Assembly: GCF_039654945.1 (NCBI RefSeq)
Contig: NW_027361690.1
Coordinates: forward strand, 19,654,001 to 19,718,000
Length of the DNA stretch: 64,000 nt
Direction: 5' to 3'
From: Dendrobates tinctorius
Lineage: Eukaryota
Shown: positions 3,420 through 62,170 of the stretch, piece after piece
Numbering within the stretch: position 1 is the stretch's first letter
How the letters are laid out: each line of letters opens with the position of its first letter
Translations under genes and position numbers: made by a program
Notes under the pieces: model-generated
Seen by the model: only the letters and a program-made list of their open reading frames with translations
Told to the model about the DNA's origin: nothing
The model's database searches: none

Positions 3420-3992
3420 CCAGGGGCGCCTGAAAACTTCGGGGCCCACCCATGAAATCTTTTTTACATGGTCTTGTTTTGCAATGCAATATGTTATTTA
3501 GTTAGTTGAATGGTCTCATGAGCAATCTGGATTTATTTTGATTTTTTTTGTTTCCGTTACAGCATTTTAAAGTTAGGTCGCAAGGCTGAAATATGGAAAT
3601 GGAGAAGTTGGCAAAGTTCACACATCGGCTGCTGCAATTCACTCCTGTAGTTTCCAATTGCTTCAGCACCCACCCTATTCCCCTGATTTGGCTCCCTCGG
3701 ACTGTCACCTATTCCCACAGATGAAAAAGCACCTTGGTGGAAGTTGGAATTGCAGCCATTGCAGCCATTGCAACAGCCGATGTGTGTACTTTGCCAACTT
3801 CTCCATTTCACCATTTCAATATTTCAGCCTTGCGACCCAACTTTAAAATGCTGTAACGGAAACAAAAAATATCAAAATAAATCCAGATTGCTCATGAGAC
3901 CATTCAACTAACTAAATAACATATTGCATTGCAACACAAGACCATGCAAAAAAATTTCATGGGTGGGCCTCGAAGTTTTCAGGCGCCCCTCG
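3420..3992. mobile_element. Non-autonomous mariner-derived MITE
   Basis: ~215-bp terminal inverted repeats and TA on both sides. The internal remnant encodes QHPPYSPDLAPSD (mariner YSPDLAP motif). Confidence 0.88.
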
Positions 3993-29437: not shown

Positions 29438-31590
29438 TATATGCTCTGCTAGCCGGCGGATGTAAACACTTTGAATGGAGTAGCAAAGCTTCTAATAGAA
29501 GCTGTTCTGCAGTACCCGGCAGCAGTCACTACACACTGGATGGATCAGCACTTTGATGTTCTATTCAAAGCCTTTACATCTGATGGTCGGAAAAGCAAAT
29601 GACAGTTGCTGGGTGTTGGGCCCACCTAATCTGATATTGATGACCTTTACAGTGGACAAGTCATCAATATGTTGTCACCGGACAACCCCCGCTATATGTC
29701 CATCTCACATTGAAGGTCTATTTTTGGGAAATCTATTGTGACAGTAGTAGTAACAGATCTACAATGCCTTCTCCTTCCAGAACAAAAAGTCAATTTTTAG
29801 AGATTTCACGGGTACCAAGAATGTTCAAAGCATATCAGCACTGATAAATCAGTACACGAGACACTATAGTACAAGTATAATAGGGAGATGCTGACCCAAC
29901 ACGAGGTATAAGCATATAATTTATGACCGAAGCTGCACAATTATATTTAATAACTGTGCTATGGGACACAAACAAGGCCATATAACTAGTGTGGTCAGCC
30001 TGGTTTAGTAGGCTTAGACCCCCTACATCTTACAGAGCCAATGGGTGAGGTTTTATTGCTGACCATAGTAACATCTGAAAGAGGTTTTCCCCAAGTTTAT
30101 GTGGAATTATAACATGGATTTATGCCTCATCCCTCCATTGTGTACTACAAGCAGTTTCTATGAAAAATGTCCTTTACTTTAACTAAAAACTATCACCAGA
30201 TCAAAACTGCCCACTATTTTGTTCGGTTTACTTTACTCCCCTGAGTACTAAGTATTCCACTTTATAACATCCGCCAAATGGTTCCAGGGATATGGGTTAA
30301 TTTCTTGTTGGTCTTTACCAATGGGGAGTGGCTCGTTGAGTAGCCAACATACCACGCTCCTTTGTAAAGACTAGAAAATTTCCCACTAAATATAAAAGCC
30401 AACATCTTTGGAACTGTATGGTAGATTTAAAAATAAATAAATAAATAAAAAACTGAATACTCAATCGAGGCGCGGGGGAAGACATAGAGCAACAACTGGC
30501 AACAAGTACTCTTTAAAATTAACCTGACAGCTGATACGTGCTGCCTGATCCACGGGCAGCATGTATCAGACACTGGCTGTGTGATCTCAGACAGGGATGT
30601 TTGACTGTGAAATGCTGCTTAGTTTAAATGCCGCTGGGGACCGAGCAGCACTGGAAATTAGTCGGACAGTGCTTCTTCACGCCCGTTGCCCGAGAGTGAC
30701 AGGTCTTTGCCTATACGCGCACGTTCATGAGCCTCATTCACTTGATTTCAAATATTCTGAGTTATTACTTCCCCTACTGACTACAGTGTACACTACATCA
30801 CAAGTGAATTCAAATAGTTATAGGCAGTCTGTCACACACCCCAAAATGATAAAAATCATACTAGCACTATATGTTACCGGTAGAGTGCATAAGAAAATAA
30901 TTTAAATTCATATGCAAATGAGGGGACTTCTGTGCACCCATCACATGGCCAAGAGCTTGCTACACGGCTATACCCCTTATTTTGCATGTTGGGCTCTTCC
31001 CTGCCTCTGATTGTCAGCACTCATTTCCTAGAGCAAGTGCTGCCTGAAGTCAGCTGGTATGTGTGTGCATACATACCTGCTACACTTCCAGGTGTATCAG
31101 AGAAGCCAGCGGCCTCAGCAGAGAGGAGAATGGAAGAGAACACACCTGGTCACTGTGTGCGAGGGGAAAAATGGGGAACAATGCATCTGGCCACTGTGCG
31201 AGTGGGGAACAATGGAGAAAAACGCAACGGACCACTGTGTGCACAGGAAGTAAGGGAGGAGAACGCACCAGACCACTGGGTGGATGGGGAGAAAGGGAGG
31301 AGAACGCACCTGGCCACTGTGTGCATGGGGAACAAGGGAGAAGAATTCATCCGGCCACTGTAGGCGTGGGAAGCAAGGGAGGAGAACGCACCTGGCCACT
31401 GTGTGCAAGGGGAGAAGGGAGGAGAATGCATCTCGCCACTGTGTGCACAGGGAGCGATGTAGAAGAACGCAACGGACCACTGTGTGCACAGGAAGTAAGG
31501 GAGGAGAACGCACCAGACCACTGGGTGCATGGGGAGAAAGGGAGGAGAACGCACCTGGCCACTGTTTGCGTGGGGAACAAAGCAGAAGAA

Positions 31591-31961
31591 CACAGCAGCC
31601 CCACCCTGCCCCAAGCTTTATTTAATTGTGCACCTGTATCTGAACCTGCATTGCCCTTCATCTATGCTTGCTGGTCAGGCAATGTGTGGAGGCTAAACCT
31701 GACACGTCTGCATTCAGACCTGGTTGGCCTTCATCCGCACTTGCCTTTTCTGGCATCATGGGAGCGATCCAGAAATGCTCAGGTACGGATTGCATTTAAA
31801 GTGGTCTTGCTTTTAATGTATCTACGAGGCCATAATGGCACAGTGTTTATTAAAAACGTAGAGTAGGACCCCCCACATGAGATTGCCTTGGCGCGGCGGG
31901 GTGGCTCAGTTGAATTGATCAATTTTTTTGCTAAATATCTCATTTTGAATACAGTTCTTTT
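31591..31961 (+). mobile_element. 371-bp non-coding insertion carrying a structured-RNA motif, flanked by a 166-bp perfect duplication
   Basis: 31425-31590 is identical to 31962-32127. Motif at 31864-31943. Confidence 0.75.
31864..31943 (+). ncRNA. Candidate HDV/CPEB3-like ribozyme motif
   Basis: ACCCC pairs with GGGGU; AUGAGAU pairs with AUCUCAU; GCC-UUGGCGC-GGC hairpin; hairpin centred on UUGAUCAA; GCUAA before the closing helix. Confidence 0.5.
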
Positions 31962-33418
31962 AATGCATCTCGCCACTGTGTGCACAGGGAGCGATGTAGA
32001 AGAACGCAACGGACCACTGTGTGCACAGGAAGTAAGGGAGGAGAACGCACCAGACCACTGGGTGCATGGGGAGAAAGGGAGGAGAACGCACCTGGCCACT
32101 GTTTGCGTGGGGAACAAAGCAGAAGAATTCATCCGGCCACTGTGTGCGCGGGAAGCAAGGGAGGAGAACGCACCTGGCCACTGTGTGCAAGGGGAGAAGG
32201 GAGGAGAATGCATCTGGCCACTGTGTGCACAGGAAGCGATGTAGAAGAACGCAACGGGCCACTGTGTGACCGGGAAGCAAGGGAGGAGATTGCACCCGGC
32301 CACTGTGTGAATGGGGAGCAAGGGAGGAGAACGCAACTGTCCACTCTGTGCGTGGGGAGCAAGGGAGAAGAATTCATCTGGCCAATATGTGCGCAGGGAG
32401 CAACAGAGGAGAACGCACCTGGCTACTGTGTGCGTGGGGAGCAATGGAAAAGAACACATCGGGCCACTATGTGGATCGGGAGCAAGGGAGGAGAACGCAC
32501 CTGGCCACTGTGTGCAAGGGGAGAAGGGAGGAGAATGCATCTGGCCACTGTGTGCACAGGGAGCGATGTAGAAGAACGCAACGGGCCACTGTGTGACCGG
32601 GAAGCAAGGGAGGAGATTGCACCCGGCCACTGTGTGAATGGGGAGCAAGGGAGGAGAATGTAACTGTCCACTGTGTGCGTGGGGAGCAAGGGAGAAGAAT
32701 TCATCTGGCCACTATGTGCGCAGGGAGCAACAGAGGAGAACGCACCTGGCTATTGTGTGCGTGGGTAGCAATGGAAAAGAACACATCGGGCCACTATGTG
32801 GATGGGGAGCAAGGGAGAACGCACCTGACCACTGTGTGCATGGGGAACAAGGGAGAATTCATCCGGCCACTGTGTGCACGGGAAGCAAGGGAGGAGAACG
32901 CACCTGGCCACTGTGTGCAAGGAGAGAAGGAAGGAGAATGCATCTGGCCACTGTGTGCACAGGAAGCGATGGAAAAGAACACATCGGGCCACTATGTGGA
33001 TGGGGAGCAAGGGAGGAGAACGCACCTGGCCACGGTGTGTGCAGGTGGCTGGGCACAGGCAGTGTCAGTGCAGACAAGCACACACAATGATTACCTTTAT
33101 GCAGAGCTCACTCTGGGAAGCGAGCGTTGTCAATCAGGAGTGGGGGGGAAACCTCCAACATTGAAAATTAGGTCACATAATAGTGCACTGAGTTCTTGGC
33201 CACTCCAAGAGTGCACCAAAGTGCTCTCATTTACAAACAAATTAAAAGTTATTTTCTCAGGCAGTGTACTGGTAACAGGTAAAGTGCTAGTATGAGTTTT
33301 ACAGGGGCTAAGTTCCCTACATCACACTATAACTCATTTAAAAATACAATTTAGGGGCAAAAGACTTCTCTTAAGTCTCGCAGCACTCCTTCAAGCGCAT
33401 AATAAATATATATATATA

Positions 33419-35021
33419 CAGTCGTGCTCAAAAGTTTACATACCCTGGCAGAATTTTTACTTTCTTGGCCTTTTCCCAGAGAACATGAATGATAACACCA
33501 AAACTTTTTCTCCACTCATGGTTAGTGGTTGGGTGAAAACATTTATTGTCAAACTACAGTGTTTTCTCTTTTTAAATCATAATGACAACACAAAACATCC
33601 AAATGACCTTGATCAAAAGTTCACATACCTTGGTGATTTTGGCCTGGTAACCTGCACAGAAGTTGACAGAAATGGGTTTGACTGGCTACTAAAGGTAACA
33701 TCCTCACCTGTGACCTGTTTGCTTGTAATCAGTGTGTGCATAAAAGCTGAGTGAGTTTCTGGGATTCAGAAAGACTTCTGCATCTTTTATCCAGCCACTG
33801 ACGTTTCTGGATTGTGAGTCATGGGGAAAGCAAAAGAATTGTCAACGGTTCTACGGGAAATGGTAGTTGAACTGTATAAAACAGGAAAGGATACAAAAAG
33901 ATATCCAGTGAATTGAAAAGCCAGTCAGCAGCATTCAAACTGTGATTAACAAATGGAAAATCAGAGGCTCTGTAAAAACAAAACCAAGGTCAGGTAAACC
34001 AACAAAAATTTTGTCCACAACTGCCAGGAAAATTGTTCGGGATGCAAAGAAAAACCCACAAATTATATCAGGTGAAATAATGGACTCTCTGAAAACTAAT
34101 GGTGTGGCTGCTGCATGGTCGAGTCACCAGAAGAAAGCCAATACTGCGCAAATGCCACAAAGTATCTTGCCAACAATACACAAAACAGCATAGAGACAAG
34201 CCTCAAAACTTCTGGAACAAGGTAACTTGGAGTGATGAGGCCAAAATTTAACATTCTGGCCACAACCATAAACGTTACATTTGGAGAGAGGTCAACAAGT
34301 ACTATGATGAAAGGAACAGCATTCCTATTGTACAGCATGGAGGTGGATCGCTGATGTTTTTGGGATGTGTGAGCTACAAAGGCACAGGAAACTTGGTCAA
34401 AGTTGAAGAAGGATAGATAAATGCAGCATGTTATCAGCAAATACAGGAGGCAAATTTGCAATGGTCAGCCAGGAAGCTGCGCATGGGGCGTACTTGGACG
34501 TTCCAACATGACTACGATCCAAAACACAAGGCCATGTCAACCTGTCATTGGCTACAGCAGAACAAAGTGAAGGTTCTAGAGTGGCCATCTCAGTCTCCTG
34601 ACCTCAAAATCGTTGATCCACTCTGGGGAAATCTCAAGCACGCAGTTCATGCCAGACAGCCCAGGAATTTACAGGAACTGGAGGCTTTTTTCCAAAAAGA
34701 GTGGTCAGCTTTACCATCTGAGAAAATAAAGAATCTCATCTACAACTACCACAAATGACTTCAAGCTGTCACTGATGTTAGACGGGGCAATACATGATAT
34801 TAAGAAATGGGGTATGTGAATTTTTGATCCGGGGCCTTTGGATGTTTTAGGTTGTCATTATGATTTAAAAAGAGAAAACACAGTAGTTTGACAATAAATG
34901 GCCTCACCCAACCACTAACCATGAGTGGAGAAAAAGTTTTGGTGTTATCATTCATATTCTCTGAAAAAAGACCAAGAAAGCAAAAATTCTGCTGAGGTAT
35001 TTAAACTTTTGAGCACAACTG
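33419..35021 (+). mobile_element. Degenerate full-length Tc1 element
   Basis: TA|CAGTCGTGCTCAAAAG...CTTTTGAGCACAACTG|TA, ~200-bp TIRs, frameshifted transposase ([17 protein letters not shown]). Confidence 0.92.
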
Positions 35022-36432
35022 TATATAAAAAAGTATCTATCTAATCCAGGAAAAAAGGTAGCAGACCAATCCCTTGTAAGTGAAAAACCATCCCTTTTTA
35101 TTCACCCATAATATAAATGTGTTTTAGATCCAAACAGAATACTGAGCCTTCCATTAGCTTCCTTTTTTTCACAGGGATTACATTTTTTGGACATTTGGAT
35201 ACATTTCCTGGGGCTTGCACCCACATATATACAAGTGCTGCTGTAATTGTTTTTTATTTCTTTCTTTTACATCTATCATGTATCTATTATCTATCTATCT
35301 ATCTATCATCATTCTTTGTTCCTAAATTCTATTATACCACTATATTCCCATATATAACAGTGCCAGATTACAAAACTGACACTGCAGGAATATTCGGACT
35401 TGCTGGGATTTACTTGACTGCTTTCTCCTCCTGGAATGCGCCTCGCTTCCATACTCCAAGTATTTAGGTAACCTCCGGTTTATCGTGATGCAATATACGT
35501 CAGAGAGACGCCAACTGCACCCGATAAAGTATGTCCATATACATCAGCCTTGTTTTAAACAAAAGTATTTGGAAAAATGCGCTCTCTAAAATAATTCACT
35601 TTTATTATCTGTTAGAAAAAAAAAATCTGCACATAGCTGACATAGTTTGGCACGAGCGCTCTATATCCTGTCATTTTTATGCAGACTGTCAGAACAATTC
35701 TTGAGCTTAATCTCTGTCAGGGATCCCATAGCAATTCCACAGTAACAGAGAAATGACACCATGGAATCAGTGTAATATTACAGCATCGGACGCGTCACTG
35801 AACATGACACCTTAACTCATTCAACATGCTTAACACTGCAATTAGCATTTTCCATCTAATTTCCAAATAAATATTGCAATCATATTTTGTATCTATTTAA
35901 AAAGTTCTGTGCACCCAAACCGATATGACAGTAAACCTATCCAACCCCTTCTAATATCTGCATTCCATATAAGCCTGTGTGAGTGAGAACAAGAGCTAGC
36001 AGTGAAGGAAATCTCTACTCATGATGTAAAGGTCCACTCCCCAGTTTTGTGTCATCGACATGATATAACATCTTGATCCCAGTGCTTGCGCCATATGGAG
36101 CCCACCCTAGTGATCAAGGCAGAAAGCCCCCAACAATGGCATTCATTTAAAGATCCCTAAGCATCTCTGGACAATGACACAGGACTTAGATCTGGCACGG
36201 TTTAGTGGTGCTGGCACCTTGATAGAACTGTGCCAGGAGGCATTATTTCATAGTTATACCCAGCATACATGAAGTTCCTGTCATCACTTTACTAGAGATA
36301 CGGTACCTGCTTCAAATCTGCACCCACAAAATAAATAATATAAATAAAATAAAAAATGGTTACATATGTGCATATAAATAGTGAAGATATTGCCAATAAA
36401 CTCAATTCATAATCATTAGACAATACACATGG

Positions 36433-36565
36433 NNNNNNNNNNNNNNNNNNNNNNNNNNNNNNNNNNNNNNNNNNNNNNNNNNNNNNNNNNNNNNNNNNNN
36501 NNNNNNNNNNNNNNNNNNNNNNNNNNNNNNNNNNNNNNNNNNNNNNNNNNNNNNNNNNNNNNNNN
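36433..36565. other. Assembly gap (133 N)
   Basis: Run of N. Confidence 1.
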
Positions 36566-36593
36566 GACAGATAGATAATAGATAGAAGATGGC

Positions 36594-36648
<55 letters not shown>

Positions 36649-36689
36649 CTGTAGATAGATAGAGGATGGCATAGATAGGGGATAGACAA

Positions 36690-36733
<44 letters not shown>

Positions 36734-37029
36734 CAGATAGGAGATAGATAGTTGATAGATATAGAATTATATATAAAGATAGAGATAGATAGATAGATAG
36801 ATGGCATAGATAGGGGATAGATAGATAGATATATAGATAGATAGATAGATAGATGGCATAGATAGGAAATAGATAGATAGATAGTATAGATAGGATATAG
36901 ATAGATAGATAGATAGATAGATAGATGGCATAGATAGGAGATAGATAGATGGCATAGATAGGAGATAGATAGATAGGAGATAGATAGCATAGATAGGAGA
37001 TAGATAGATAGATAGATGGCATAGATGGC

Positions 37030-37088
<59 letters not shown>

Positions 37089-37129
37089 CTGTAGATAGAT
37101 AGAGGATGGCATAGATAGGGGATAGACAA

Positions 37130-37179
<50 letters not shown>

Positions 37180-37423
37180 GGCAGATAGGAGATAGATAGT
37201 TGATGGATATAGAATTATATATAAAGATAGATATAGATAGATAGATATATAGATAGATAGATAGATAGATAGATAGATGGCAGATAGGAGATAGATAGAT
37301 AGATGGCATAGATAGGGGATATATAGATAGATAGATGGCATAGATAGGAGATAGATAGATAGGAGATAGATAGATAGATAGATGGCATAGATAGGAGATA
37401 GATAGGAGATAGATAGATAGCAG

Positions 37424-37492
<69 letters not shown>

Positions 37493-37541
37493 CTGTAGAT
37501 AGATAGAGGATGGCATAGATAGGGGATAGACAAATAGATAA

Positions 37542-37590
<49 letters not shown>

Positions 37591-37683
37591 AGATAGCAGA
37601 TAGGAGATAGATAGTTGATAGATATAGAATTATATATAAAGATAGATATAGATAGATAGATAGATAGATAGATGGCAGATTGG

Positions 37684-37727
<44 letters not shown>

Positions 37728-37767
37728 GGCATAGATAGATGGCATAGATAGGAGATAGATAGATAGG

Positions 37768-37823
<56 letters not shown>

Positions 37824-37876
37824 GGCAGATAGGAGATAGATAGTTGATAGATATAGAATTATATATAAAGATAGAT

Positions 37877-37908
<32 letters not shown>

Positions 37909-37935
37909 GAGATAGATAGATAATAGATAGTATAG
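36566..37935. repeat. Compound (GATA)n microsatellite array
   Basis: Directly visible, with recurring interruptions. Confidence 0.98.
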
Positions 37936-38091
37936 ACAAACATTATAATACAATGGCTTTAGGCATTGTTATGCAGACAATATAATTAGCATCTAATTAA
38001 TGCCAATCTGCCATTTAATGACATGAATTCTTCCAGAGAGCAGGGATGCAGAGAACAGTCATAGATGGGAATGATCACTGGTGCTATTTAC

Positions 38092-38252
38092 CCTTTCAGG
38101 ACATCATGCCCCACGCCGGCTCCTCCACCTCTCCTCTTGGCTCGGTTGGCTCGGGGCTCCTTCAGTGTCTCTGATGTCACCTCTTTGTCGCTGGCACTGA
38201 AGGAGAACACTGTCAGTCCCAGCGCCAGCCCCAGCAGAGTACCCAGCCTCAT
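38092..38252 (-). CDS. fbn1: Fibrillin-1 first coding exon (signal peptide and propeptide)
   Basis: MRLGTLLGLALGLTVF...KEPRANRAKRRGGGAGVGHDVLKG matches the FBN1 N-terminus as I recall it (..KETRASRAKRRGGGGHDALKG), including the furin site RAKR. Ends at a phase-2 donor GG|GTAAAT. Possible acceptor TTTCAG| at 38343. Confidence 0.9.
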
Positions 38253-38339
38253 CCTGATCCACAGCAGTGTCCGGCTCAGCTCTGTGCTCCACGGGGTCCT
38301 GTCCAAAAGAAGAAAGAACAGTCTTCTCACATTAGGAGG

Positions 38340-38790
38340 AAGCTGAAAGCGACCGAAGCCCCAGCAGAAGCGCTATCTACCCCTGTCCGGCTCTCTCGCC
38401 TCCGGCTCCGGTGCACCCTGCTCCAAAGTAGCGTTACGCAGGCAAAAGGGCGCACAGCCCGACCCCCAGGACGCACGCTGGCCAAGAAGTGCTCTTCCAG
38501 GGGGCTTCAGCAGGCTGTGAGAGCTGCACACGCCATGGCGATGCTTGTGCTGTCAGGGCAGATGCTATTAAGAATTTATACAACCAAGTGGCCGTTAGGG
38601 ACAATAAACAAGATAAAAAGCCTTATGGCAGAGAACCCGCCCAGCGCCATCAGCAGAGCTGCGGCTGCTCCTACTCAGGGCTCTGCCTTTCTTGGCTGCT
38701 GCAGCTGGTGAGGCTGTCCGGGGGCTGTGCGCTCAGTGCGAGCCCACCATACAGGCAGCAGGCTCGGGGTCACCGGCACCAGCACTGCTA
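38340..38790 (-). promoter_or_regulatory. GC/CpG-rich region 5' of the fbn1 first coding exon (promoter or non-coding exons)
   Basis: Unique, CpG-rich sequence adjacent to the exon. TSS not determined. Confidence 0.45.
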
Positions 38791-40145
38791 GGGGTGAGGA
38801 GACTCTGGGGGTGAGGAGACCCTGGGGGTGAGGAGACTCTAGGGGTGAGGAGAGCCTGGGGGTGAGGAGACTCTAGGGGTGAGGAGACCCTGGGGTGAGG
38901 AGACTAGGGGTGAGGAGAGCCTGGGGGTGAGGAGACCCTGGGGTGAGGAGACTCTAGGGGTGAGGAGACCCTGGGGTGAGGAGACACTAGGGGTGAGGAG
39001 ACCCTGGGGGTGAGGAGACCCTGGGGGTGAGGAGACACTAGGGGTGAGGAGACACTGGGGGTGAGGAGACTAGGGGTGAGGAGAGCCTGGGGGTGAGGAG
39101 ACCCTGGGGTGAGGAGACTCTAGGGGTGAGGAGAGCCTGGGGGTGAGGAGACTCTAGGGGTGAGGAGACCCTGGGGTGAGGAGACTAGGGGTGAGGAGAC
39201 TAGGGGTGAGGAGACCCTGGGGTGAGGAGACTAGGGGTGAGGAGACCCTGGGGTGAGGAGACTCTAGGGGTGAGGAGACCCTGGGGTGAGGAGACACTAG
39301 GGGTGAGGAGACACTAGGGGTGAGGAGACCCTGGGGGTGAGGAGACCCTAGGGGTGAGGAGACCCTGGGGGTGAGGAGACACTAGGGGTGAGGAGACACT
39401 GGGGGTGAGGAGACTAGGGGTGAGGAGAGCCTGGGGGTGAGGAGACTCTAGGGGTGAGGAGACCCTGGGGTGAGGAGACTCTAGGGGTGAGGAGAGCCTG
39501 GGGGTGAGGAGACTCTAGGGGTGAGGAGACCCTGGGGTGAGGAGACTAGGGGTGAGGAGACTAGGGGTGAGGAGAGCCTGGGGGTGAGGAGACCCTGGGG
39601 TGAGGAGACTAGGGGTGAGGAGACCCTGGGGTGAGGAGACTCTAGGGGTGAGGAGACCCTGGGGTGAGGAGACACTAGGGGTGAGGAGACACTAGGGGTG
39701 AGGAGACCCTGGGGGTGAGGAGACACTAGGGGTGAGGAGACACTGGGGGTGAGGAGACTAGGGGTGAGGAGAGCCTGGGGGTGAGGAGACTCTAGGGGTG
39801 AGGAGACCCTGGGGTGAGGAGACTCGGGGTGAGGAGACCCTGGGGGTGAGGAGACTCTGGGGGTGAGGAGACCTAGGGGTGAGGAGAGCCTGGGGGTGAG
39901 GAGACACTAGGGGTGAGGAGACACTAGGGGTGAGGAGACCCCGGGGGTGAGGAGACCCTAGGGGTGAGGAGACCCTGGGGGTGAGGAGACACTAGGGGTG
40001 AGGAGACCCTGGGGGTGAGGAGACTCTAGGGGTGAGGAGATCCTGGGGGTGAGGAGACTCTAGGGGGTGAGGAGACCCTAGAGTTGAGGAGACTCTAGGG
40101 GTGAGGAGACTCTAGGGGTGAGGAGACCCTAGGGGTGAGGAGACC
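38789..40145 (+). repeat. G-rich 15-17 bp minisatellite (GGGGTGAGGAGAC...)n
   Basis: Directly visible; G4-5 runs in nearly every unit. Confidence 0.97.
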
Positions 40146-40494
40146 TCTGGGATCCGGGTCACTTCTCTCTGGAGACACTGGGTTTGCTCTGATGCAGGAC
40201 ATCTTAAAGGGCACTGCTACTTAAAGGGAATCCTACACCGCCAACACTGAAATGGAACCATTAATACATTCATGTAGGAGACTTAGACTCTATAGAAATT
40301 ATACTTGTGTTAAAGATTTTGATTATTTTGCCCAAAATGACCGTAGGTAAAGCAGGATGCCGATAATAGGGAAGAAAGCAATGATGGAGAAGGGAGAGTC
40401 AGCGCCTCCATCATGCTTCCTCTGACACAGGGTCAAACTGGCCCACCGGAGAACTGGAGGATTAGCGCAGCGGGCTTGATGACGTCACTACAAC

Positions 40495-40850
40495 AACATG
40501 GAAGGCTATGTGGGCCATTATATTATATAGAAGGCTATGTGAGACAAATTATATTATATAAAGGCAATATGGGGCCCATTACATTATATAGAAGGCTATG
40601 TAGGGGCCATTACATTATATGGAAGGCTATGTAGGGGCCATTACATTATATGGAAGGCTATATGGGGCATAATATACTGTTTAAAGAGCTATATGAGGGC
40701 CATTATACTGTTTGGAGAGTTATGTGGGAGCCATTATACTGTTTGGAGGGCTACAGGGGGATATCATACTGTTTGGGGGGCTTTGTGGGGCCATCATACT
40801 GTGTGGGTGCCATCATAATTTGTGGAGGGCTGTGTTGAGGTGTCCAACTG
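40495..40850. repeat. Degenerate ~29-bp tandem repeat (ggggccattatattatatggaaggctatgt-like)
   Basis: Directly visible; probably internal to an old non-autonomous element. Confidence 0.7.
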
Positions 40851-41086
40851 AGTTTCGGTATAATACTGAGTTGGGGGGTCACCATACTTTACCGGGTGGT
40901 TACATATGAGAAACTGGGTCTGAGCAGAAAAAGTAAATTAATGTGCATGCAAAATGTAATTGCATATGAACACATGACCTTTACACAGAGAAAACCAAAA
41001 ACAAAACACAAAACAAATATCCTGGAATAAAAAAGTAAAAAAATCTATTGCAAAAATTGCATGAAGGTAGTAATAATAGTAATAAT

Positions 41087-41170
41087 AAGGGTATTTAGTT
41101 AACATAATTTTGATCAAAATAATGTAGAAGCCATCCCGCCACGTCACGGCAACCCTTGTGGGACAGTCCT
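41087..41170 (-). ncRNA. Candidate HDV/CPEB3-like ribozyme motif, copy 1
   Basis: (CU)GUCCC pairs with GGGAU(GG); AAGGGU pairs with ACCCUU; GCC-GUGACGU-GGC hairpin; ACAU..UUUUGAUCAAAA..AUGU hairpin; ACUAA. Confidence 0.5.
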
Positions 41171-41508
41171 AACTCTTGTATTTAAAAACCTTTCCACTTG
41201 TCAAGTGACGTAAATGTGAACAAGGACAGAGGGACTGAACCACCAGTAATAGTGTAGGCCAGACAGGATGGATTTTCCAACTCAGAAACAGGGCGGTCAC
41301 ACCCTTATATGCACAGAATGCACAATGAAACAAATGAGAAACTGGGTCTGAGCAGAAAAAGTAAATTAATGTGCATGCAAAATGTAATTGCATATGAACA
41401 CATGACCTTTACACAGAGAAAACAAAACACAAAACAAATATCCTGGAATAAAAAAGTAAAAAAAATCTATTGCAAAAATTGCATGAAGGTAGTAATAATA
41501 GTAATAAT

Positions 41509-41592
41509 AAGGGTATTTAGTTAACATAATTTTGATCAAAATAATGTAGAAGCCATCCCGCCATGTCACGGCAACCCTTGTGGGACAGTCCT
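41509..41592 (-). ncRNA. Candidate HDV/CPEB3-like ribozyme motif, copy 2
   Basis: Same as copy 1 except the loop reads GUGACAU. Confidence 0.45.
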
Positions 41593-42683
41593 AACTCTTG
41601 TATTTAAAAATTTTTGCAATAGATTTTTTTACTTTTTTATTCCAGGATATTTGTTTTGTGTTTTGTTTTTGGTTTTCACCGGGTGGTTACAGTAGAGTCA
41701 TCATACCGCGCATCTGGGGAGTGCAGGATTAAAATTCACTGTGGTGGTATCATACTGTGTTTGGGAGCACTTTTGTTGACATCATACTTTATAGGGGCAA
41801 TGAACGAGGAATCTAGGGCTTCAAAAAGAGGAAAATTACTCTGTAAGTGCTGCAAAGTTGTGAGATATGCTCTTCTGTGCCTCCCCCGAATATTATTATT
41901 TTTTACTTTTTTTATGAGGGAATCCCGATTAGAACTTCTTAAACGGGAACCCATTATTTCTATATATTTCTCTGACAGGAGCGGAAGATGAGAGCTTTGT
42001 CTATGTAGGAGCCAAACACACACTATCAGAACGCGCTCTCGTCTCTCCTATCAGCATTGGCCGCCTGCTGCTGCTGGAGCGCTGTCAGTCATCACAAGAA
42101 TGATAACTGAGGTGATGGGAAAGTTCTCTTTAAAATCTTAAAGAGATTAGTACTTTACTGAATAGTGTCAAAACTTTTAAAGCTTCTGAACTAGTAGATT
42201 TCTGGGAAAGCTGGGTAACAAGATTATGGATATAACGATATGCAGAGACTTTGAAGACATAGGCTGGAAAGTGAAGGAACTGGGAGCACAGGTCGTCTTC
42301 TCATACATCCTCCCAGTGGATGGGCATGGACCAAGGAGATTGAACAGGATTCTACAGGTGATCAACTGGCTACGTCGATGATGCCATGAGCAACGTTTTG
42401 GGTTTCTTGACCATGGAGTGAATTACCTGTATGATGGACTCCTTGCTAGAGATGGGTTGCATCTTACGAAAACAGCAAAACACATATTTGGTAGACGCCT
42501 TGCTATACTCATCAGGAGAGCTTTAAACTAGAGCAATATGAGATGGGAAATATACGGCCAGGTAGAAATATTCAGCTAATGAAGTTTTTGGAGAACCCTG
42601 CTATTTATTAGAAGTGCAAAAACGGCGTGAAAGTGCAATGAGGACTGCGCTTGCTTCTGGTGGAGTACAAAGTTCTTTATTCA

Positions 42684-42725
42684 GCCAACGCGTTTCCTGA
42701 GCCTACTGGCTCACTTCATCAGGGC
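42684..42725 (-). ncRNA. Type I hammerhead ribozyme (Penelope pLTR)
   Basis: Reverse complement of 45155-45196. Confidence 0.75.
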
Positions 42726-45154: not shown

Positions 45155-45196
45155 GCCCTGATGAAGTGAGCCAGTAGGCTCAGGAAACGCGTTGGC
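45155..45196 (+). ncRNA. Type I hammerhead ribozyme (Penelope pLTR)
   Basis: GCC CUGAUGA AG UGAGCC AGUA GGCUCA G GAAAC GC GUU GGC; palindromic minimal stem III. Confidence 0.75.
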
Positions 45197-53582: not shown

Positions 53583-56500
53583 TTACTGCAGGTTATAGGC
53601 TTGTCGGAAGAGGTGGGTCTTCAGGCTCTTTTTGAAGGTTTCGATGGTAGGTGAGAGTCTGATATGTTGTGGTAGAGAGTTCCAGAGTAGGGGTGATGCG
53701 CGAGAGAAATCTTGTATGCGATTGTGGGAAGAGGAGATAAGAGGGGAGTAGAGAAGGAGATCTTGTGAGGATCGGAGGTTGCGTGCAGGAAAGTACCGGG
53801 AGACGAGGTCACAGATGTATGGAGGAGACAAGTTGTGGATGGCTTTGTATGTCATGGTTAGGGTTTTGTAATGGAGTCTCTGGGCAATTGGGAGCCAGTG
53901 AAGGGATTGACAGAGGGGAGAAGCTGGGGAATAGCGGGGGGACAGGTGGATTAGTCGGGCAGCAGAGTTTAGAATAGATTGGAGGGGTGCGAGAGTGTTT
54001 GAGGGGAGGCCGCAGAGCATGAGGTTGCAGTAGTCAAGGCGAGAGATGATGAGGGCATGGACTAGGGTTTTTGCAGATTCTTGGGTGAGGAATGAACGGA
54101 TGCGTGAAATATTTTTGAGTTGAAGTCGGCAGGAAGTGGAAAGGGTTTGAATATGTGGTTTGAAGGAGAGATCAGCATCAAGGATTACTCCGAGGCAGCG
54201 AGCTTGTGGGACTGGGGAGAGTGGGCAGTCATTTACTGTAATTGATAGGTTCGTAGGGGGGGTCACGTGAGATGGGGGAAAGATGATGAATTCTGTTTTG
54301 TCCATGTTGAGTTTCAGATATCTAGTGGAGAAGAAGGATGAAATAGTGGACAGACATTGAGGGATTCTGGTTAGTAGGGAGGTGATATCTGGTCCAGAGA
54401 TGTAGATCTGTGTGTCATCAGCATAAAGATGATACTGAAAGCCATGAGATTCTATGAGCTGTCCCAGGCCAAAGGTGTAAATAGAGAACAGCAGGGGCCC
54501 TAGGACTGAACCTTGTGGGACTCCGACAGATAGGGGGCGAGGTGAGGAGGTGGTGTGTGAGTGGGAGACGCTGAATGTCCGGTCTGTTAGGTATGATGAG
54601 ATCCAGGAGAGGGCCAAGTCTGTGATGCCGAGGGATGAGAGGGTCTGTAATAATAGGGAATGGTCCACTGTGTCAAAGGCAGCCGACAGGTCCAGGAGGA
54701 GGAGGACAGAGTAGTGTCGCTTGCTCTTGGCAGTTATGAGGTCATTGGTGACCTTAGTAAGGGCAGTTTCAGTGGAGTGGTGTGACCGGAAGCCAGATTG
54801 TAAGCGGTCGAAGAGGGAGCAAGAAGAGAGATGGGAGGACAGTTCAAGGTAGACGTGTTGTTCCAGTAGCTTGGAGGCGTATGGGAGAAGTGATATAGGG
54901 CGATAGCTAGATACAGAGGATGGGTCAAGAGAGGGCTTTTTGAGGATAGGTGTGATGGAGGCATGTTTAAAGCTTGAGGGGAAAACACCAGTTGTTAGTG
55001 ATAGGTTGAAGAGATGGGTTAGGGTTGGGATGAAGACTGTGGTGAGGTTTGGGATGAAGTGGGATGGGATCGGGTCGAGTGCACAGGTGGTGAGATGTGA
55101 TCTTGAGAGTAGAGTGGAGAGTCGATCTTCTGTAATGGTGGAGAAGTTGGTTTTGAAGGTGGAGGGCTGGGAAGTCGGGAGGAAGGGCTCTGGGGGTTGT
55201 TGACCAAAACTGTCCCTGATGTTATCAATTTTCTGCTTGAAAAATGAGGCAAAGTCTTCAGCTGAGATGAGTGGGGAGGGAGGAGGTGCTGGGGGGCGGA
55301 GGAGAGAATTGAAGGTGTTGAATAACTGTTTAGGGTTGTGAGACAGGGAGGATATGAGAGATGAGAAGTAGGTTTGTTTAGCTGTGGCGAGTGTGGTCTT
55401 GAAAGTAGTGAGGGACTGTTTGAATGCGATGAAATGCTCGTTGGAGTGGGATCTTTTCCATCTGCGCTCAGCAGCCCTGGAAGCTCGCCTCAGCTCTTTG
55501 GTCAGGCTGGTGTGCCAGGGCTGTCTGTTGATTTTGCGAGTTTTGGTATGTGTAAGTGGGGCAGCGGATTCCAAAGCTACAGCTATTGTGGTGTTATATA
55601 GAGCGGCAGCGTCATCCGCATTGTGTAAGGAACTTATATCTGTAAGAGGGAGGAGGGATTCGGAGAATGAGTGTAGGTCAAGGTGTTTAAGATTCCTGCG
55701 AGGGTGTGAAAGTTTGTGGGGTGGGGATTGTAGACATGGAGTGAAGAGGGAGGAGAATGTGAGCAGGTTGTGGTCAGAGAGAGGAAGAGGTGAGTTAGAG
55801 AGGTTAGATAGGGAGCAGAGGCGGGTGAAGATGAGGTCCAGTGTGTGGCCATCTTTGTGGGTGGCTGTAGAAGACCATTGAGTGAGGCCGAAGGAGGAAG
55901 TGAGAGATAGAAGTTTAGTGGCAGCTGAGAGGGAAGTGTCAATGGGGATGTTGAAGTCGCCCATGATGATAGTAGGGATGTCCGCGGAAAGGAAATGAAG
56001 TAACCAGGTGGTGAAGTGGTCAAAGAAGGTGGTGGCTGGCCCTGGGGGGCGGTAGATGACAGCCAGTTGGAGGTTGGAGGGGGAGTAGATGCGCACAGAG
56101 TGCACCTCAAAGGAAGGGAGGGTAACAGAGGGTGGCAGTGGGATTGGGGTGAAGGAGCAGGTATCTGACAGGAGAAAACCAACTCCTCCACCATGTTTGC
56201 TGCTGGGGCGGGGGGTTTGAGAAAGGTGGAAGCCGCCATACGAAAGTGCAGCAGGAGAGGCTGTGTCAGAAGGGGTGAGCCAGGTTTCGGTGATGGCGAG
56301 GAAGGAGAGTTTGGTAGTAACAAAAAGATCATGGATGTAGGAAAGCTTGTTGCAGACAGAGCGAGCGTTCCACAGAGCTCCTGTTAGTGGGACTGGGGAA
56401 GCGGGGGCTGGGTGAATGGGTATAAGGTTGGAGAGGTTACGGAAGGTTGTGATAGAGCGTGGATGGGAGGTAGAAATGACTGTGGGAATGTGGTGAGGAG

Positions 56501-56759
56501 GACCAGGATTTGGAGAGATATCACCAGCAGTGAGAAGGAGCAGAGAAAGTGTTACCAGGTGGGAGCAGGAGAGGGCATGAGGGGGCTGTCTGTGTTTGGA
56601 GACAGAGGATTGTATGTTAAGGAACAGTTTTGAGGCGGAGGTGAGGTGGATGGGGAGGATTGAAGAAGAGATGAACAGTTCCTTACTAGGAGTAGGGATT
56701 AGGGGAATTAGCAGAAAGTGAAGGATTATTGGGGTGAAAGTGAAAACAAACAGAAACAT
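53583..56759 (-). CDS. L2 APE endonuclease-reverse transcriptase, intact 1058 aa, with N-terminal 2A-like motif
   Basis: WNARS, ITETWL, GDFN, SDH; [24 protein letters not shown]; GDISPNPGP. Confidence 0.95.
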
Positions 56760-58036: not shown

Positions 58037-61020
58037 GGGAAGGGAAGCAAAAGACCAGAAAAAGCCATACACCTGACAAATGCTATTGAGAACTCTGCTA
58101 TTAGAAGTGGAAAGGAAGAACAAAGACAAAAGAATCTAATTAATAAAAATATTGGAGAAAGAGAAACCAATCACAAACTAAAATGTTTCTATACTAATGC
58201 ACAAAGCATGGGCAACAAACAAGGAGAATTGGAAATACTAACACAGGAAAAGAAATATGATGTCATTGGAATCACTGAAACTTAGTGGGACAATACACAT
58301 GATTGGAATACAAGACTAGAAGGATACAACTTATTTGCAAGAAACAGACTTGATAAACGAGGAGGGGGTGTCGCATTGTATGTTAGAAACGCGTATATCT
58401 GCACAGAGATTGACGCTTCAGAGACTGGGAGTTCTGTGGAAACTGGGCAAGAATACAAGGACAGACCAATGGAAAGGACACCATTGTAGGCATTTACTAC
58501 AGGCCGCCTGTGCAAGCTGAAGACATGTATGAACTCTTTTTGCATCAAATGGCCAAGTTCTCCAAAAAATATGACATAGTTGTCATGGGAGATTTCAACT
58601 ATCCAGACATTTGTTGGGAATCTCTCTCAGGCAAAACTAACAGGTCAAGGAAATTCTTATCCTCTCTTGCTGACAACTTTATCTTCCAAAAGGTAGGGGA
58701 GAAAACAAGGGGAACTGCTACCTTGGATCTAATCCTCATAAACAGGGAGGAAATGGTTGAGGAGGTAAAAGTGGCTGGGACCCTAGGAGGTAGCGACCAT
58801 GCTATTTTAGAATTTTGGATAACTAGAGGAGGAAGACCTGTGAAGACTCAGACGTCAAGGTTAGATTTCAGAAAGGCAGATTTTAAGGGATTCAGAAAGA
58901 GAATTGGAGGGATCCAATGGATGGATATCCTTAAAGACAAAAATGTCCAGGAAGGATGGGAAATCTTGAAAAATGAAATTCTCAAAGCACAATTGTTAAC
59001 AATTCCGAAAAGAGGGAAGAATAGGAAGCATTTAAGGAAGCCAGGATGGATGAACACAGAAATTAAGCACATGCTAAAAAGGAAGAAAAAAATGTTTATA
59101 AGTTTATAAAATGGAAAGAGGGAGGCATATCTAAAGAAGAATATAATGCTGTCTGCAGAACCTGCAGGGCACAAATCAGATTATCTAAAGCTGACAATGA
59201 ATTGAGGCTTGCAAGAGATGTCAAAAGCAATAATAAAGGTTTTTGGGGGTATGTCAAAAGTAAAAGAAAAGTCAAAGATGCTATAGGATTTTTACAGGAT
59301 GAAAATGATGAAATGGTAAGACAGGATGTTGAGAAGGCCGAACTTTTAAATTCCTATTTTGCATCTGTTTTCTCTCAGAAAGGAAATGTAACATCAACTG
59401 TTCTTCACTGTCCTATTAAGGGAATTGAAGAATCCAGGATATCTATAAACAGAAAGATAGTGAGGAAACACTTAGCTAACCTAAATGAATTCAAGTCTCC
59501 AGGTCCAGATGAATTACACCCCAGAGTACTGAAGGAGATAGCAGAAGAAATTTTTGAACCCCTCTCCATAATCTTTGAAAATTCTTGGAGAACAGGAGAA
59601 GTCCCAGAAGACTGGAGAAGAGCAAATGTTGTTCCTATCTTCAAAAAGGGAAAGAAGGTGGACCCAGGCAACTATAGGCCGGTGAGTCTGACTTCTATAC
59701 CAGGAAAGATCTTTGAACAAATTATTAAACAACATGTATGTCAGTACCTGGATAAGAATGAAGTGATTAAACAGAGTCAGCATGGGTTTGTAACTAATAA
59801 GTCATGTCAGACTAACTTAATTTCCTTCTATGATGGAATCACTGATTGGGTGGATCAAGGAAATGCTGTAGATATAGTATATCTTGACTTCAGCAAAGCA
59901 TTTGACAAAGTATCTCATACAATCCTTATTGAAAAAATGACTAAGTATGGAATGGACAAGGCAACTGTTAGGTGGATTCATAACTGGCTTAGTGATCGGA
60001 CCCAAAGAGTGGTCGTAAATGGCTACACATCCAGTTGGAAGAATGTCTCAAGTGGGGTACCACAGGGCTCTGTCCTGGGCCCTGTATTGTTCAACATCTT
60101 TATCAACGATTTAGATGAAGGAATTGAGGGTAAACTGATTAAATTTGCTGATGACACAAAGCTAGGAGGGATAGCTAATACTAGAGAAGAGAGAGAGAGG
60201 ATTCAAAAAGATATAAATAAACTGGAGAAGTGGGCAGCAACTAACAAAATGGGTTTTAACAGGGAAAAATGCAAAGTACTACATCTGGGCAATAAAAATG
60301 AAAAAAAGTATATACAGAATGGGAGGAATAGGGCTAAACAACAGCACATGTGAAAAAGACTTGGGTATACTAATAGATCACAGACTGAATATGAGTCAAC
60401 AGTGTGATGCAGCAGCAAAAAAGGCAAATGCAATTCTAGGATGTATTAACAGAAGCATACAGTCTAGATCGCGTGAAGTCATTATTTCCCTCTACTCCTC
60501 TTTGGTCAGACCTCATCTGGAATATTGTGTCCAGTTTTGGGCACCACATTTTAAAAAAGACATCAACAAACTGGAGCAAGTTCAGAAAAGAGCGACCAGA
60601 ATGGTGACCGGTCTGCAAACCCTGTCTTATGAGGAAAGGTTGCAGGATTTGGGAATGTTTAGTTTGCAAAAGAGAAGACTGAGAGGAGACTTAATAGCTG
60701 TCTACAAATATCTAAAGGACTGTCACATTGCAGAAGGATCAACTTTATTCTCATTTGCACAAGGAAAGACTAGAAGCAATGGGATGAAACTAAATGGGAG
60801 GAGACACAGATTAGATATTAGAAAAAACTTTTTGACAGTTAGAGTGATCAATGAGTGGAACAAGCTGCCACGAGAAGTGGTGAGTTCTCCTTCAATGGAA
60901 GTCTTCAAACAGAGGCTGGACAGACATCTGACTGGGATGATTTAGCGAATCCTGCTTTGAGCAGGGGGTTGGACCAGATGGCCCAGGAGGTCCCTTCCAA
61001 CTCTACGATTCTATGATTCT
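58037..61020 (+). mobile_element. CR1 LINE with near-complete, frameshifted ORF2
   Basis: [34 protein letters not shown]; ATTCTATGATTCT tail. Confidence 0.96.
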
Positions 61021-61287
61021 GCAGCAGTCGGCAAAGGCGCTCAATCAGTGAAATCCTAGGTGCATTGCACCCTGGGAAATACGAATATGCAAATAAAATC
61101 TGTGGAGCCTCATTTAAGAGTCTCAAACACAGGACTAGCCAGATCTTCCTCCAGGGAAGGACCCAGCCAAGGAGTGGCTCCTTTCGGAAACCACCATTGC
61201 CACCATATTAAGTGGCCCTTTAAGTCAATATCCAGTTCTTTACGAGTTTACAGATATCACAAGGGAAATACCAAGGCCAGGTATCCA

Positions 61288-61331
61288 TCCACAGACAGCT
61301 GTTTCGGGGTGTTTCCCCTCATCAGTGTGGA
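61288..61331 (-). ncRNA. Type I hammerhead ribozyme
   Basis: UCCACA CUGAUGA GGGG AAACA CCCC GAAAC AGCU GUC^ UGUGGA. Complete core; predicted cleavage between 61294 and 61293. Confidence 0.92.
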
Positions 61332-61688
61332 ATAGGATTCTGGCTAGGTGGGAGCAATGCCTAGTAGACCAACATCACGAAACAATCACTGACCTCAGGG
61401 AGACCAGTCAAAGAAAACACTGCGGCAGCCGGCAAAGGCGCTCAATCAGTGAAATCCTAGGTGCATTGCTCCCTGGGAAATACGAATATGCAAATAAAAT
61501 CTGTGGAGCCTCATTTAAGAGTCTCAAACATGGGACTAGCCAGATCTTCCTCCAGGGAAGGACCCAGCCAAGGAGTGGCTCCTTTCGGAAACCACCATTG
61601 CCACCATATTAAGTGGCCCTTTAAGTCAATATCCAGCTCTTTACGAGTTTACAGATATGACAAGGGAAATACCAAGGCCAGGTATCCA

Positions 61689-61732
61689 TCCACAGACAGC
61701 TGTTTCAGGGTGTTGCCCCTCATCAGTGTGGA
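61689..61732 (-). ncRNA. Type I hammerhead ribozyme, second copy
   Basis: Same fold; stem II GGGG CAACA CCCU, with G-U at the core-proximal pair. Confidence 0.85.
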
Positions 61733-62170
61733 GTAGGATTCTGGCTAGGTGGGAGCAATGCCTAGTAGACCAACATCACAAAACAATCACTGACCTCAGG
61801 GAGACCAGTCAAAGAAAACACTGCGGCAGCCGGCAAAGGCGCTCAATCAGTGAAATCCTAGGTGCATTGCTCCCTGGGAAATACGAATATGCGAGTCGTT
61901 AGAATAGCTGCTGTGTGACAAGGTCCCAACGACCGCTGAGGTCGTTTTACGGATCGCCGTATCGTTGCTGCATTGTTGAGTAGATCTTCCTGTTTGACAA
62001 CTTACTAGAGACCATGTAGCGATGTACCAGCGATCCTTACAAGGTCGTATCGTTGTCAGGATCGCTGGAGCATCGCTATGTGTAACGGGACCCTTACAGT
62101 AGTGCAGGAAGTGGTGTACGGCGTAGTTCAACAAGATGGTTTGACACTGTGAGGAGAAGAGTGGTGCACG

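Follow-up and report, generated by a model that had tools for sequence, protein, structure and literature searches.

Animal retrozymes lacking long terminal repeats (non-LTR retrozymes) are non-coding units of a few hundred nucleotides (nt) that occur as monomers or short tandems flanked by target site duplications (TSDs) (PMC7229834; bioRxiv 10.64898/2026.07.22.740005), and their defining ribozyme is the type I hammerhead. Hepatitis delta virus (HDV)-type ribozymes also reside on retroelements, in R2 and other long interspersed nuclear elements (LINEs; PMC7761336), where those of R2, RTE and L1Tc are located at the 5' end of a protein-coding, autonomous element and trim its co-transcript. A third group, the theta-ribozymes and minimal ribozymes of gut phages, is laid out in its published tables as G...-P2-RCC-U-CC-NCGY-GGY-P1'-GG-...-CUAA-P2' (PMC10879173 supplement). 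Here, we analyze a 64,000-nt stretch of the Dendrobates tinctorius genome (GCF_039654945.1, NW_027361690.1, positions 19,654,001–19,718,000 of the forward strand; in the following termed the window, whose coordinates are used throughout) in which two small inserts, A and B, carry three copies of one RNA motif: copy A at 31869–31943 (+), copy B2 at 41166–41087 (−) and copy B1 at 41588–41509 (−). The motif is a real, structured and strand-specific RNA motif. We consider it to be a variant subclass of the HDV-like (delta-type) ribozyme fold carried by retrozyme-like non-coding retroelements, a reading to which we assign a probability of roughly two in three. Judged from its sequence, the variant core would have C1-G37 in place of the G1.U37 wobble, and UG of L3 opposite CU where the canonical form sets CC against GG.

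The three copies were found where the initial annotation of this DNA had placed them, and their number is far beyond expectation: the pattern GCC-N7-GGCGGGRTGGCT has 3 matches in the window against 0.15 expected (0/100 shuffles reached 3), and TTGATCAA-N5-20-CTAAAT likewise has 3 against 0.05 expected, with none of the shuffles reaching three. B1 and B2 follow each other in a single tandem, so that the independent occurrences amount to two, A and B. Neither the two inserts nor the hammerhead region described below resemble one another in blastn comparisons (word size 7, E ≤ 1), confirming the earlier impression that the remainder of the inserts is dissimilar; common to A and B are the motif and ~23 nt directly upstream of it, and nothing more. 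An assembly gap (36433–36565) lies 4.5 kb off insert A and 4.3 kb off insert B and touches neither; with more than 4 kb to each locus, no finding hinges on continuity across it.

We read the RNA from the C following UAGGA, which gives a P1 of 7 nt. In this register, the copies are composed as follows (scores are those of the phage-only covariance model described further below):

31869–31943 (+), ribozyme fold of copy A; 19.9 bits, E = 0.007
31869–31875 with 31898–31904 (+), copy A P1, CCCCCC(A)/GGGGUGG, 5/7 paired
31876 (+), copy A J1/2, C
31877–31883 with 31937–31943 (+), copy A P2, AUGAGAU/AUCUCAU, 7/7 paired
31885–31887 with 31895–31897 (+), copy A P3, GCC/GGC
31888–31894 (+), copy A L3, UUGGCGC
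31905–31906 (+), copy A C38-U39
within 31907–31930 (+), copy A P4 hairpin, AAUU-GAUC-AAUU
31931–31936 (+), copy A J4/2, CUAAAU
41087–41166 (−), ribozyme fold of copy B2, the best copy; 28.2 bits, E = 7e-5
41166–41160 with 41137–41131 (−), copy B2 P1, CUGUCCC/GGGAUGG, 7/7 paired including two G.U
41159–41158 (−), copy B2 J1/2, AC
41157–41152 with 41092–41087 (−), copy B2 P2, AAGGGU/ACCCUU, 6/6 paired, followed by a single U
41150–41148 with 41140–41138 (−), copy B2 P3, GCC/GGC, 3 bp
41147–41141 (−), copy B2 L3, GUGACGU
41130–41129 (−), copy B2 C38-U39
within 41128–41099 (−), copy B2 P4 hairpin, long stem with GAUC loop
41098–41093 (−), copy B2 J4/2, CUAAAU, whose catalytic-position C is 41098
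41509–41588 (−), ribozyme fold of copy B1; 22.5 bits, E = 0.0016

All three copies follow the strand order P1-P2-P3-P3'-P1'-(P4)-P2', that is, the nested double pseudoknot of the HDV and CPEB3 ribozymes that the initial annotation had recognized. The deviations from this fold that it had listed dissolve upon re-registering: its P1 of ~5 bp becomes one of 7 bp, to which the GG of GGCU belongs; the P1.1 it had found missing may be provided by the C of GGCU, for which the G in the third position of L3 is a possible partner beside a U.U, as the UG of L3 opposite CU would permit G(L3)-C38 plus U.U; and its bulge in P2 was a product of the helix register. The first pair of P1 in the frog copies is C1-G37, and the G1.U37 wobble is not present. 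CUAAAU directly precedes P2' in 3/3 frog copies, with the catalytic-position C kept. Folding of copy B2 at minimum free energy, restricted to nested pairs, recovers P2 and P4. The helices covary between A and B, as had been claimed for P2 and P1: 4/6 aligned P2 pairs differ on both strands with pairing kept, P1 has one double-changed pair (C-G in A, U-A in B), and P4 adds two such pairs (AAUU/AAUU versus UUUU/AAAA) that flank a constant GAUC. The palindrome that had been described as fixed does not hold throughout, since UUGAUCAA is replaced by UGUCUAGGAUA in the P4 of a B-family relative from transcript-like contigs.

The copies differ in their integrity. In copy A, P1 is interrupted by the mismatches C3xU35 and A7xG31. 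Copy B1 equals B2 apart from its L3, GUGACAU, in which the equivalent of G25 has become A at 41564 by a CpG transition; the equivalents of U20 and G25 are held in A and B2. The corresponding G25A mutation abolished cleavage by an HDV-like ribozyme of C. briggsae (PMC13635239). B1 is predicted to be inactive by analogy, and both A and B1 are probably impaired.

Relatives of the motif in phages, viral contigs and metagenomes form the second line of evidence. The viral contigs were scanned with the core alone, GCC-UUGNCGU-GGC-N5-GGCU, a query that carries no information on the 5'-strand of P1, and at least 108 loci were retrieved. A perfect 7-bp P1 partner is present 9–11 nt upstream of P3 in 49/80 unique core matches versus 2/80 decoy windows, with 28 distinct P1' sequences among the viral core matches. 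Copies that could be parsed display the complete delta-type layout, with P1 and P2 joined by a short J1/2 and followed by the core, a covarying P4 that may be absent, a C-N-R-A(+0–2) junction and P2'; most phage copies are devoid of P4, as are the published minimal and theta-ribozymes. The core shared by copies from the frog, phages, the giant-virus-sized contig described below and metagenomes is GCC-UUGNCGU-GGC-P1'-CU...C-N-R-A-P2'. An initial scan of the viral contigs that demanded the TTGATCAA palindrome had no match, nor did a metagenome scan that demanded the frog leader TAGGAC plus the core, while one demanding CUAAAU returned 28 contigs, including two repeat families whose P1, P2 and P4 are perfect yet differ between the families:

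L112–L136 (Ga0209568, Ga0056115, Ga0056116), metagenomic family one
L109, L117, L119, L123, L129 and L130 (Ga0213866, Ga0213868), metagenomic family two

The module common to the two is a ~190-nt block comprising a perfect ribozyme of the C1 type, P4 and the J4/2 CUAAAU, with mosaic flanks. At least six P4-bearing C1-type folds were also found in a 617,453-bp 'viral' contig (IMGVR_UViG_650627024_000001; L008, L016, L053, L055), a giant with an abundance of 66-nt FNIP-like repeats.

When the class was aligned in full with MAFFT, the result lacked structural consistency, so a subset of identical geometry was taken for a covariance model, which was built from ten phage copies only, with P1 and P3 as pairs, and with which the whole window was searched with filters off. 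The top three matches were B2, B1 and A, in this order, and the next match in the window had an E value of 1.1. Throughout the phage alignment, the catalytic-position C does not vary. When 49 distinct model matches were aligned, 98.8% of cells paired versus 38–53% with slid partners; this alignment is model-fitted, which favors pairing, but the decoy-window test of P1 is independent of it. Six of the seven P1 pairs are double-changed in the class alignment, and the first pair is C-G in 46/48 rows. A descriptor control that swapped the catalytic C for A, G or U was non-discriminating, CUAAGA also holding A-A-G-A, and was dropped.

The genomic surroundings of the phage copies are informative as well. 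Some are located ~30–45 nt downstream of RAGATH-15 RNAs, two phage examples being L002 1863–1916 and L003 2498–2551, minimal ribozymes at a distance of ~30 nt, whose RAGATH-15 neighbors score 240 and 224 bits, respectively. On both contigs, a RAGATH-12 RNA lies a few hundred nt beyond the C1-type ribozyme, and L003 also has a weak twister-P1 match. On phage contig L001, one C1-type copy (739–775, −) begins 3 nt past the encoded CCA end of tRNA-Val and another (3572–3607, −) 1 nt past that of tRNA-Leu; both sit in an array of 13 phage tRNAs, and their P1.1 candidates are CG/CC and UU/AU. The abutting CCA ends support a cut at model position 1, and would extend the theta-ribozyme idea to ribozymes that begin with C. 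At the sixty phage loci where an adjacent tRNA was sought to fix the register of the cut site, none was present.

Regarding class assignment, the frog motif shares with CPEB3 and other HDV-like ribozymes the order P1-P2-P3-L3(7 nt)-P3'-P1'-P1.1'-P4-J4/2-P2', a 3-bp P3 and a J4/2 that opens with C followed by N-R-A. The CPEB3 ribozyme, in addition, has an L3 ending in ..ACGU, like that of copy B2, and a P1.1 of one Watson–Crick pair beside a U.U, as proposed for the frog motif. Unlike these ribozymes, the frog motif has C1-G37 and not G1.U37, and G-C and not C-G as the putative P1.1 pair; and it sits in a mobile repeat, whereas the CPEB3 ribozyme resides in a conserved intron. With the theta- and minimal ribozymes of gut phages it has in common, as far as their supplementary tables go, the core RCC-U-NN-NCGY-GGY, P1', two P1.1 nucleotides, CUAA(N) and P2' (PMC10879173); furthermore, most of its phage relatives have no P4, and a few of its phage relatives abut tRNA 3' ends. 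In contrast, the published theta-ribozymes of these tables all start with G and have U-CC in L3 (rarely UC or GC) and then GG (GA, GC), the core string GCCTTGACGTGGC was not found in the searched portions of that paper's supplementary files, and the frog copies have a P4 region of 24–30 nt and no tRNA nearby. A P1.1 of the proposed make-up has precedents: natural covariation at this position in the theta-ribozyme tables includes CC/GG and, rarely, UC/GA and GC/GC (PMC10879173 supplement), and crystals of a phage HDV-like ribozyme that cleaves rapidly display one Watson–Crick pair plus U.U (PMC13635239). The natural series at the Watson–Crick pair of P1.1 comprises C-G, G-C and U-A. With a core common to phage, viral-contig and metagenomic copies, the motif fits the HDV-like family as a variant and does not constitute the new ribozyme class that the initial annotation had favored; the alternative offered there, a non-canonical HDV-like RNA, agrees with what we find, as the motif turns into a coherent variant once P1 is re-registered and a G-C pair in P1.1 becomes possible. 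A search of the whole window with Rfam models at the gathering score gave no ribozyme match.

The inserts that carry the motif resemble mobile elements:

31591–31961 (+), insert A, 371 nt within a 41-nt host tandem repeat, bounded by an exact duplication
31425–31590 and 31962–32127 (no strand), perfect direct duplication of 166 nt flanking insert A, the longest exact shared stretch
31846–31868 (+), conserved leader of A, UUAAAAACGUAGAGU-AGGA, just 5' of the predicted cut site
40905–41674 (−), insert B, ~1.8 tandem units of 422 nt (repeat spacing 422/428)
40888–40904 and 41675–41691 (no strand), TSD of insert B, TT(T/C)ACCGGGTGGTTACA, 17 nt, 16/17 identical
41189–41167 (−), conserved leader of B, UUAAAUACAAGAGUUAGGA

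Insert A cleanly interrupts the host repeat, and its ribozyme fold begins 278 nt into the insert and ends 18 nt from its 3' end. The 166-nt duplication may reflect insertion at a staggered break (a very long TSD), recombination within the repeat or an assembly artefact. In insert B, one substitution and two indels separate the two units, and the 5' end in the RNA sense is an inverted 76-nt piece of the unit (41609–41684), complementary to 40983–41058 with 96% identity. Beyond this arrangement, neither insert contains internal repeats (direct or inverted ones are absent from A) or sizeable open reading frames (ORFs; none above 74 aa in B). The notion of small mobile inserts that had been put forward initially is thus corroborated, most directly by B as a tandem multimer within a single TSD, with both inserts being non-coding. 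Multimer and 5' inversion within one target duplication suggest that a multimeric or circular template was reverse-transcribed, as far as can be judged from the inserted sequence. The ~23-nt leader, UUAAA.AC..AGAGU(U)AGGA, is retained between otherwise unrelated inserts and would form the 3' end of the unit RNA after cleavage.

In these respects, the inserts are akin to retrozymes: they are non-coding, have one small ribozyme fold per unit, occur as monomer or short tandem flanked by duplications, and are found in an amphibian, a group in which retrozymes abound. Set against the size range of non-LTR retrozymes (~170–400 nt, with TSD), B has 1.8 units of 422 nt with a 17-nt TSD and A has 371 nt. 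They differ from retrozymes in that the defining ribozyme there is a type I hammerhead and here an HDV-like fold; on either strand of A and B, neither a hammerhead core nor an Rfam match was detected. They also differ in that HDV-like ribozymes cleave at their own 5' edge; the ribozyme helix would therefore not hold the ends of the unit RNA together in the way known from hammerhead retrozymes. With the HDV-like ribozymes of R2, RTE and L1Tc the inserts share a delta-type ribozyme fold on a retroelement, used by those elements on their own transcript. Theirs, as outlined above, head autonomous coding elements, whereas here the unit is non-coding and ~400 nt long, and the ribozyme fold is internal and repeated in every tandem unit. 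Since the retrozyme literature that we searched describes hammerheads only, an HDV-like element of the retrozyme type appears to be undescribed within that literature.

Contig sets that are putatively derived from RNA, from the source organism and two relatives, also hold the B unit. The contigs contain joints that lead back 428 and 413 nt; being joints in assembler contigs without visible read ends, they are equally compatible with tandem DNA, multimeric RNA and circles. Four listed differences fall into the 84-nt ribozyme part versus ~35 into the other 280 nt; two of the changes, at 41127 and 41100, are linked and, at the P4 base, replace a CxA by a G.U, and one difference makes the L3 UUGACGU. 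These contig differences fit a constraint on the fold, to the extent that sequence comparison can tell. The B-family relative mentioned above was seen in loose contig ends at 41082 (runs X1 and X15); it has P1' CCUAUGG, the short P4 UGUCUAGGAUA with a CUAG-like, self-complementary loop, and CUAAAU. A contig of another organism has CCAUAGG in the place of the P1 5'-strand, which hints at a compensatory P1, the two coming from different runs.

Other features of the window concern possible partners and neighbors:

53583–56759 (−), intact LINE ORF of 1058 aa with endonuclease (APE) and reverse transcriptase
61301–61325 and 61702–61726 (−), hammerhead cores CUGAUGA-GGGG..CCCC-GAAAC, one per 401-bp unit in a tandem at 61019–61892
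42692–42722 (−) and 45158–45188 (+), identical inverted hammerhead-like cores CUGAUGAAGUGAGCCAGUAGGCUCAGGAAAC, 2.4 kb apart and ~1 kb from insert B

The LINE, whose 3' untranslated region terminates with (AAT)n near 53350, might act as a trans-mobilizer, and nothing ties it to A or B: a 3' tail shared by the inserts and this LINE was considered and rejected, given its (AAT)n end and the fact that CAGTT(T)CT near the insert ends is not above chance. The 401-bp hammerhead tandem directly follows LINE fragments (APE and reverse transcriptase pieces, 58510–60353, +) and has no Rfam hammerhead match even at E ≤ 1. The inverted CUGAUGAAGUGAGCCAGUAGGCUCAGGAAAC pair may represent the two ends of a Penelope-like element.

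Several observations weigh against a delta-type ribozyme on retrozyme-like elements. With respect to the ribozyme, the comparison with Rfam that the initial annotation had proposed yielded no match of the frog loci to HDV-type models (HDV, CPEB3, drz etc.) or other ribozyme models at E ≤ 10, and the phage examples were not matched by HDV-type models at E ≤ 1; the canonical G1.U37 wobble and the CC/GG P1.1 are missing; and no cleavage results for a C1-G37/G-C subclass were found in the literature searched. Likewise, A has a P1 paired at only 5/7 positions, and in B1 the G25 equivalent is mutated. Folding energies restricted to nested pairs are no better than those of shuffled sequences (z = 0.86, 0.20 and −0.18), and the 422-nt unit in its entirety shows no unusual degree of structure (z = −0.3), but such scores are uninformative for a motif that is a pseudoknot. 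On the side of the element, the ends of the inserts fall elsewhere than at the predicted cut site, which at the same time argues against a linear monomer template and against 5' processing of the R2/RTE/L1Tc type; an autonomous partner element for A or B was not identified in the window; the ambiguity of the contig joints counts here as well; and the 166-nt duplication around insert A, which could be an assembly artefact, far exceeds a usual TSD.

How do other explanations fare with this evidence? That the likeness arose by chance, or that two unrelated repeats have a DNA-level motif in common, for instance a palindrome or a site bound by a protein, could be argued from the mere two independent occurrences in the window, from TTGATCAA being a perfect DNA palindrome and from the thermodynamic z-scores near zero. 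This is very improbable in our eyes: pattern counts are far above the shuffled expectation, the helices change yet still pair, the model matches are strand-specific, and a model made from unrelated phage sequences retrieves exactly the three frog sites. More serious is the idea of an RNA that derives from an HDV-like ribozyme but no longer cleaves, serving for example in recognition by reverse transcriptase or in packaging, or of these copies being dead relics. With C1-G37 and the swapped P1.1, two canonical features of the active site are lost; P1 is mismatched in A and the G25 equivalent mutated in B1, and the 23-nt leader outside the ribozyme is equally conserved. Set against this are the catalytic-position C, the U...CG of L3 and the C-N-R-A junction, all kept in phage, viral-contig, metagenomic and frog copies, as well as the phage copies that adjoin tRNA ends and RAGATH-15 RNAs, places where self-cleavers sit; on balance, we regard a loss of function of this kind as unlikely.

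Finally, a genuine HDV-like ribozyme might process the 5' end of a transcript of the LINE type, or of that of short interspersed nuclear elements (SINEs), in the style of R2, RTE and L1Tc and without any retrozyme-like cycle. HDV-like ribozymes occur in R2 and other LINEs (PMC7761336), the window contains the intact LINE ORF listed above, and the 17-nt TSD and 5' inversion of insert B are hallmarks of LINE-type insertion. But elements processed in this way carry their ribozyme at the 5' end, whereas in insert A it is deep in the element and close to the 3' end; insert B holds 1.8 units inside one TSD, with a ribozyme fold in each unit; and the covariance model finds no ribozyme copy at the LINEs of the window. 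We thus consider this account, too, rather unlikely and favor the delta-type variant on retrozyme-like elements.

For elements of this kind, we infer catalysis, circles and a mobilizing enzyme in the following sequence. Tandem transcripts would cut themselves 5' of C1, after ...UUAGGA, and cleavage would release unit-length RNAs that start with the ribozyme and have 5'-OH and 2',3'-cyclic phosphate ends. These unit RNAs, probably ligated to circles or present as uncut multimers, would be copied by a reverse transcriptase supplied in trans, and the copies would be inserted with a TSD, in some cases as multi-unit copies that bear a 5' inversion. It is a tentative proposal, at somewhat below even odds, that the C1-G37/G(L3)-C38 form represents an active, widespread and so far unannotated delta subclass, found in phages, a giant-virus-sized contig, further repeat-rich DNA of metagenomes and frogs, and that it drives frog 'delta-retrozymes'. 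Similarly, that the latter are ~370–420-nt RNAs that self-excise, circularize and reinsert, sometimes as multimers, alongside the hammerhead retrozymes of this genome, is in our view possible but not yet probable.

The variant core would alter two active-site pairs that are treated as invariable in structure-based searches and by Rfam models, which would explain why hundreds of phage and eukaryote-like copies are unannotated. The variant offers a natural test of the weight of the G.U wobble in catalysis, for which copy B2 is a ready construct. Animal retrozymes and related small circular RNAs have so far been defined by the hammerhead; a delta-type family with the same mode of life in a vertebrate, if our reading is true, would mean that genomic elements can exchange one ribozyme module for another, a view already put forward for infectious circular RNAs.

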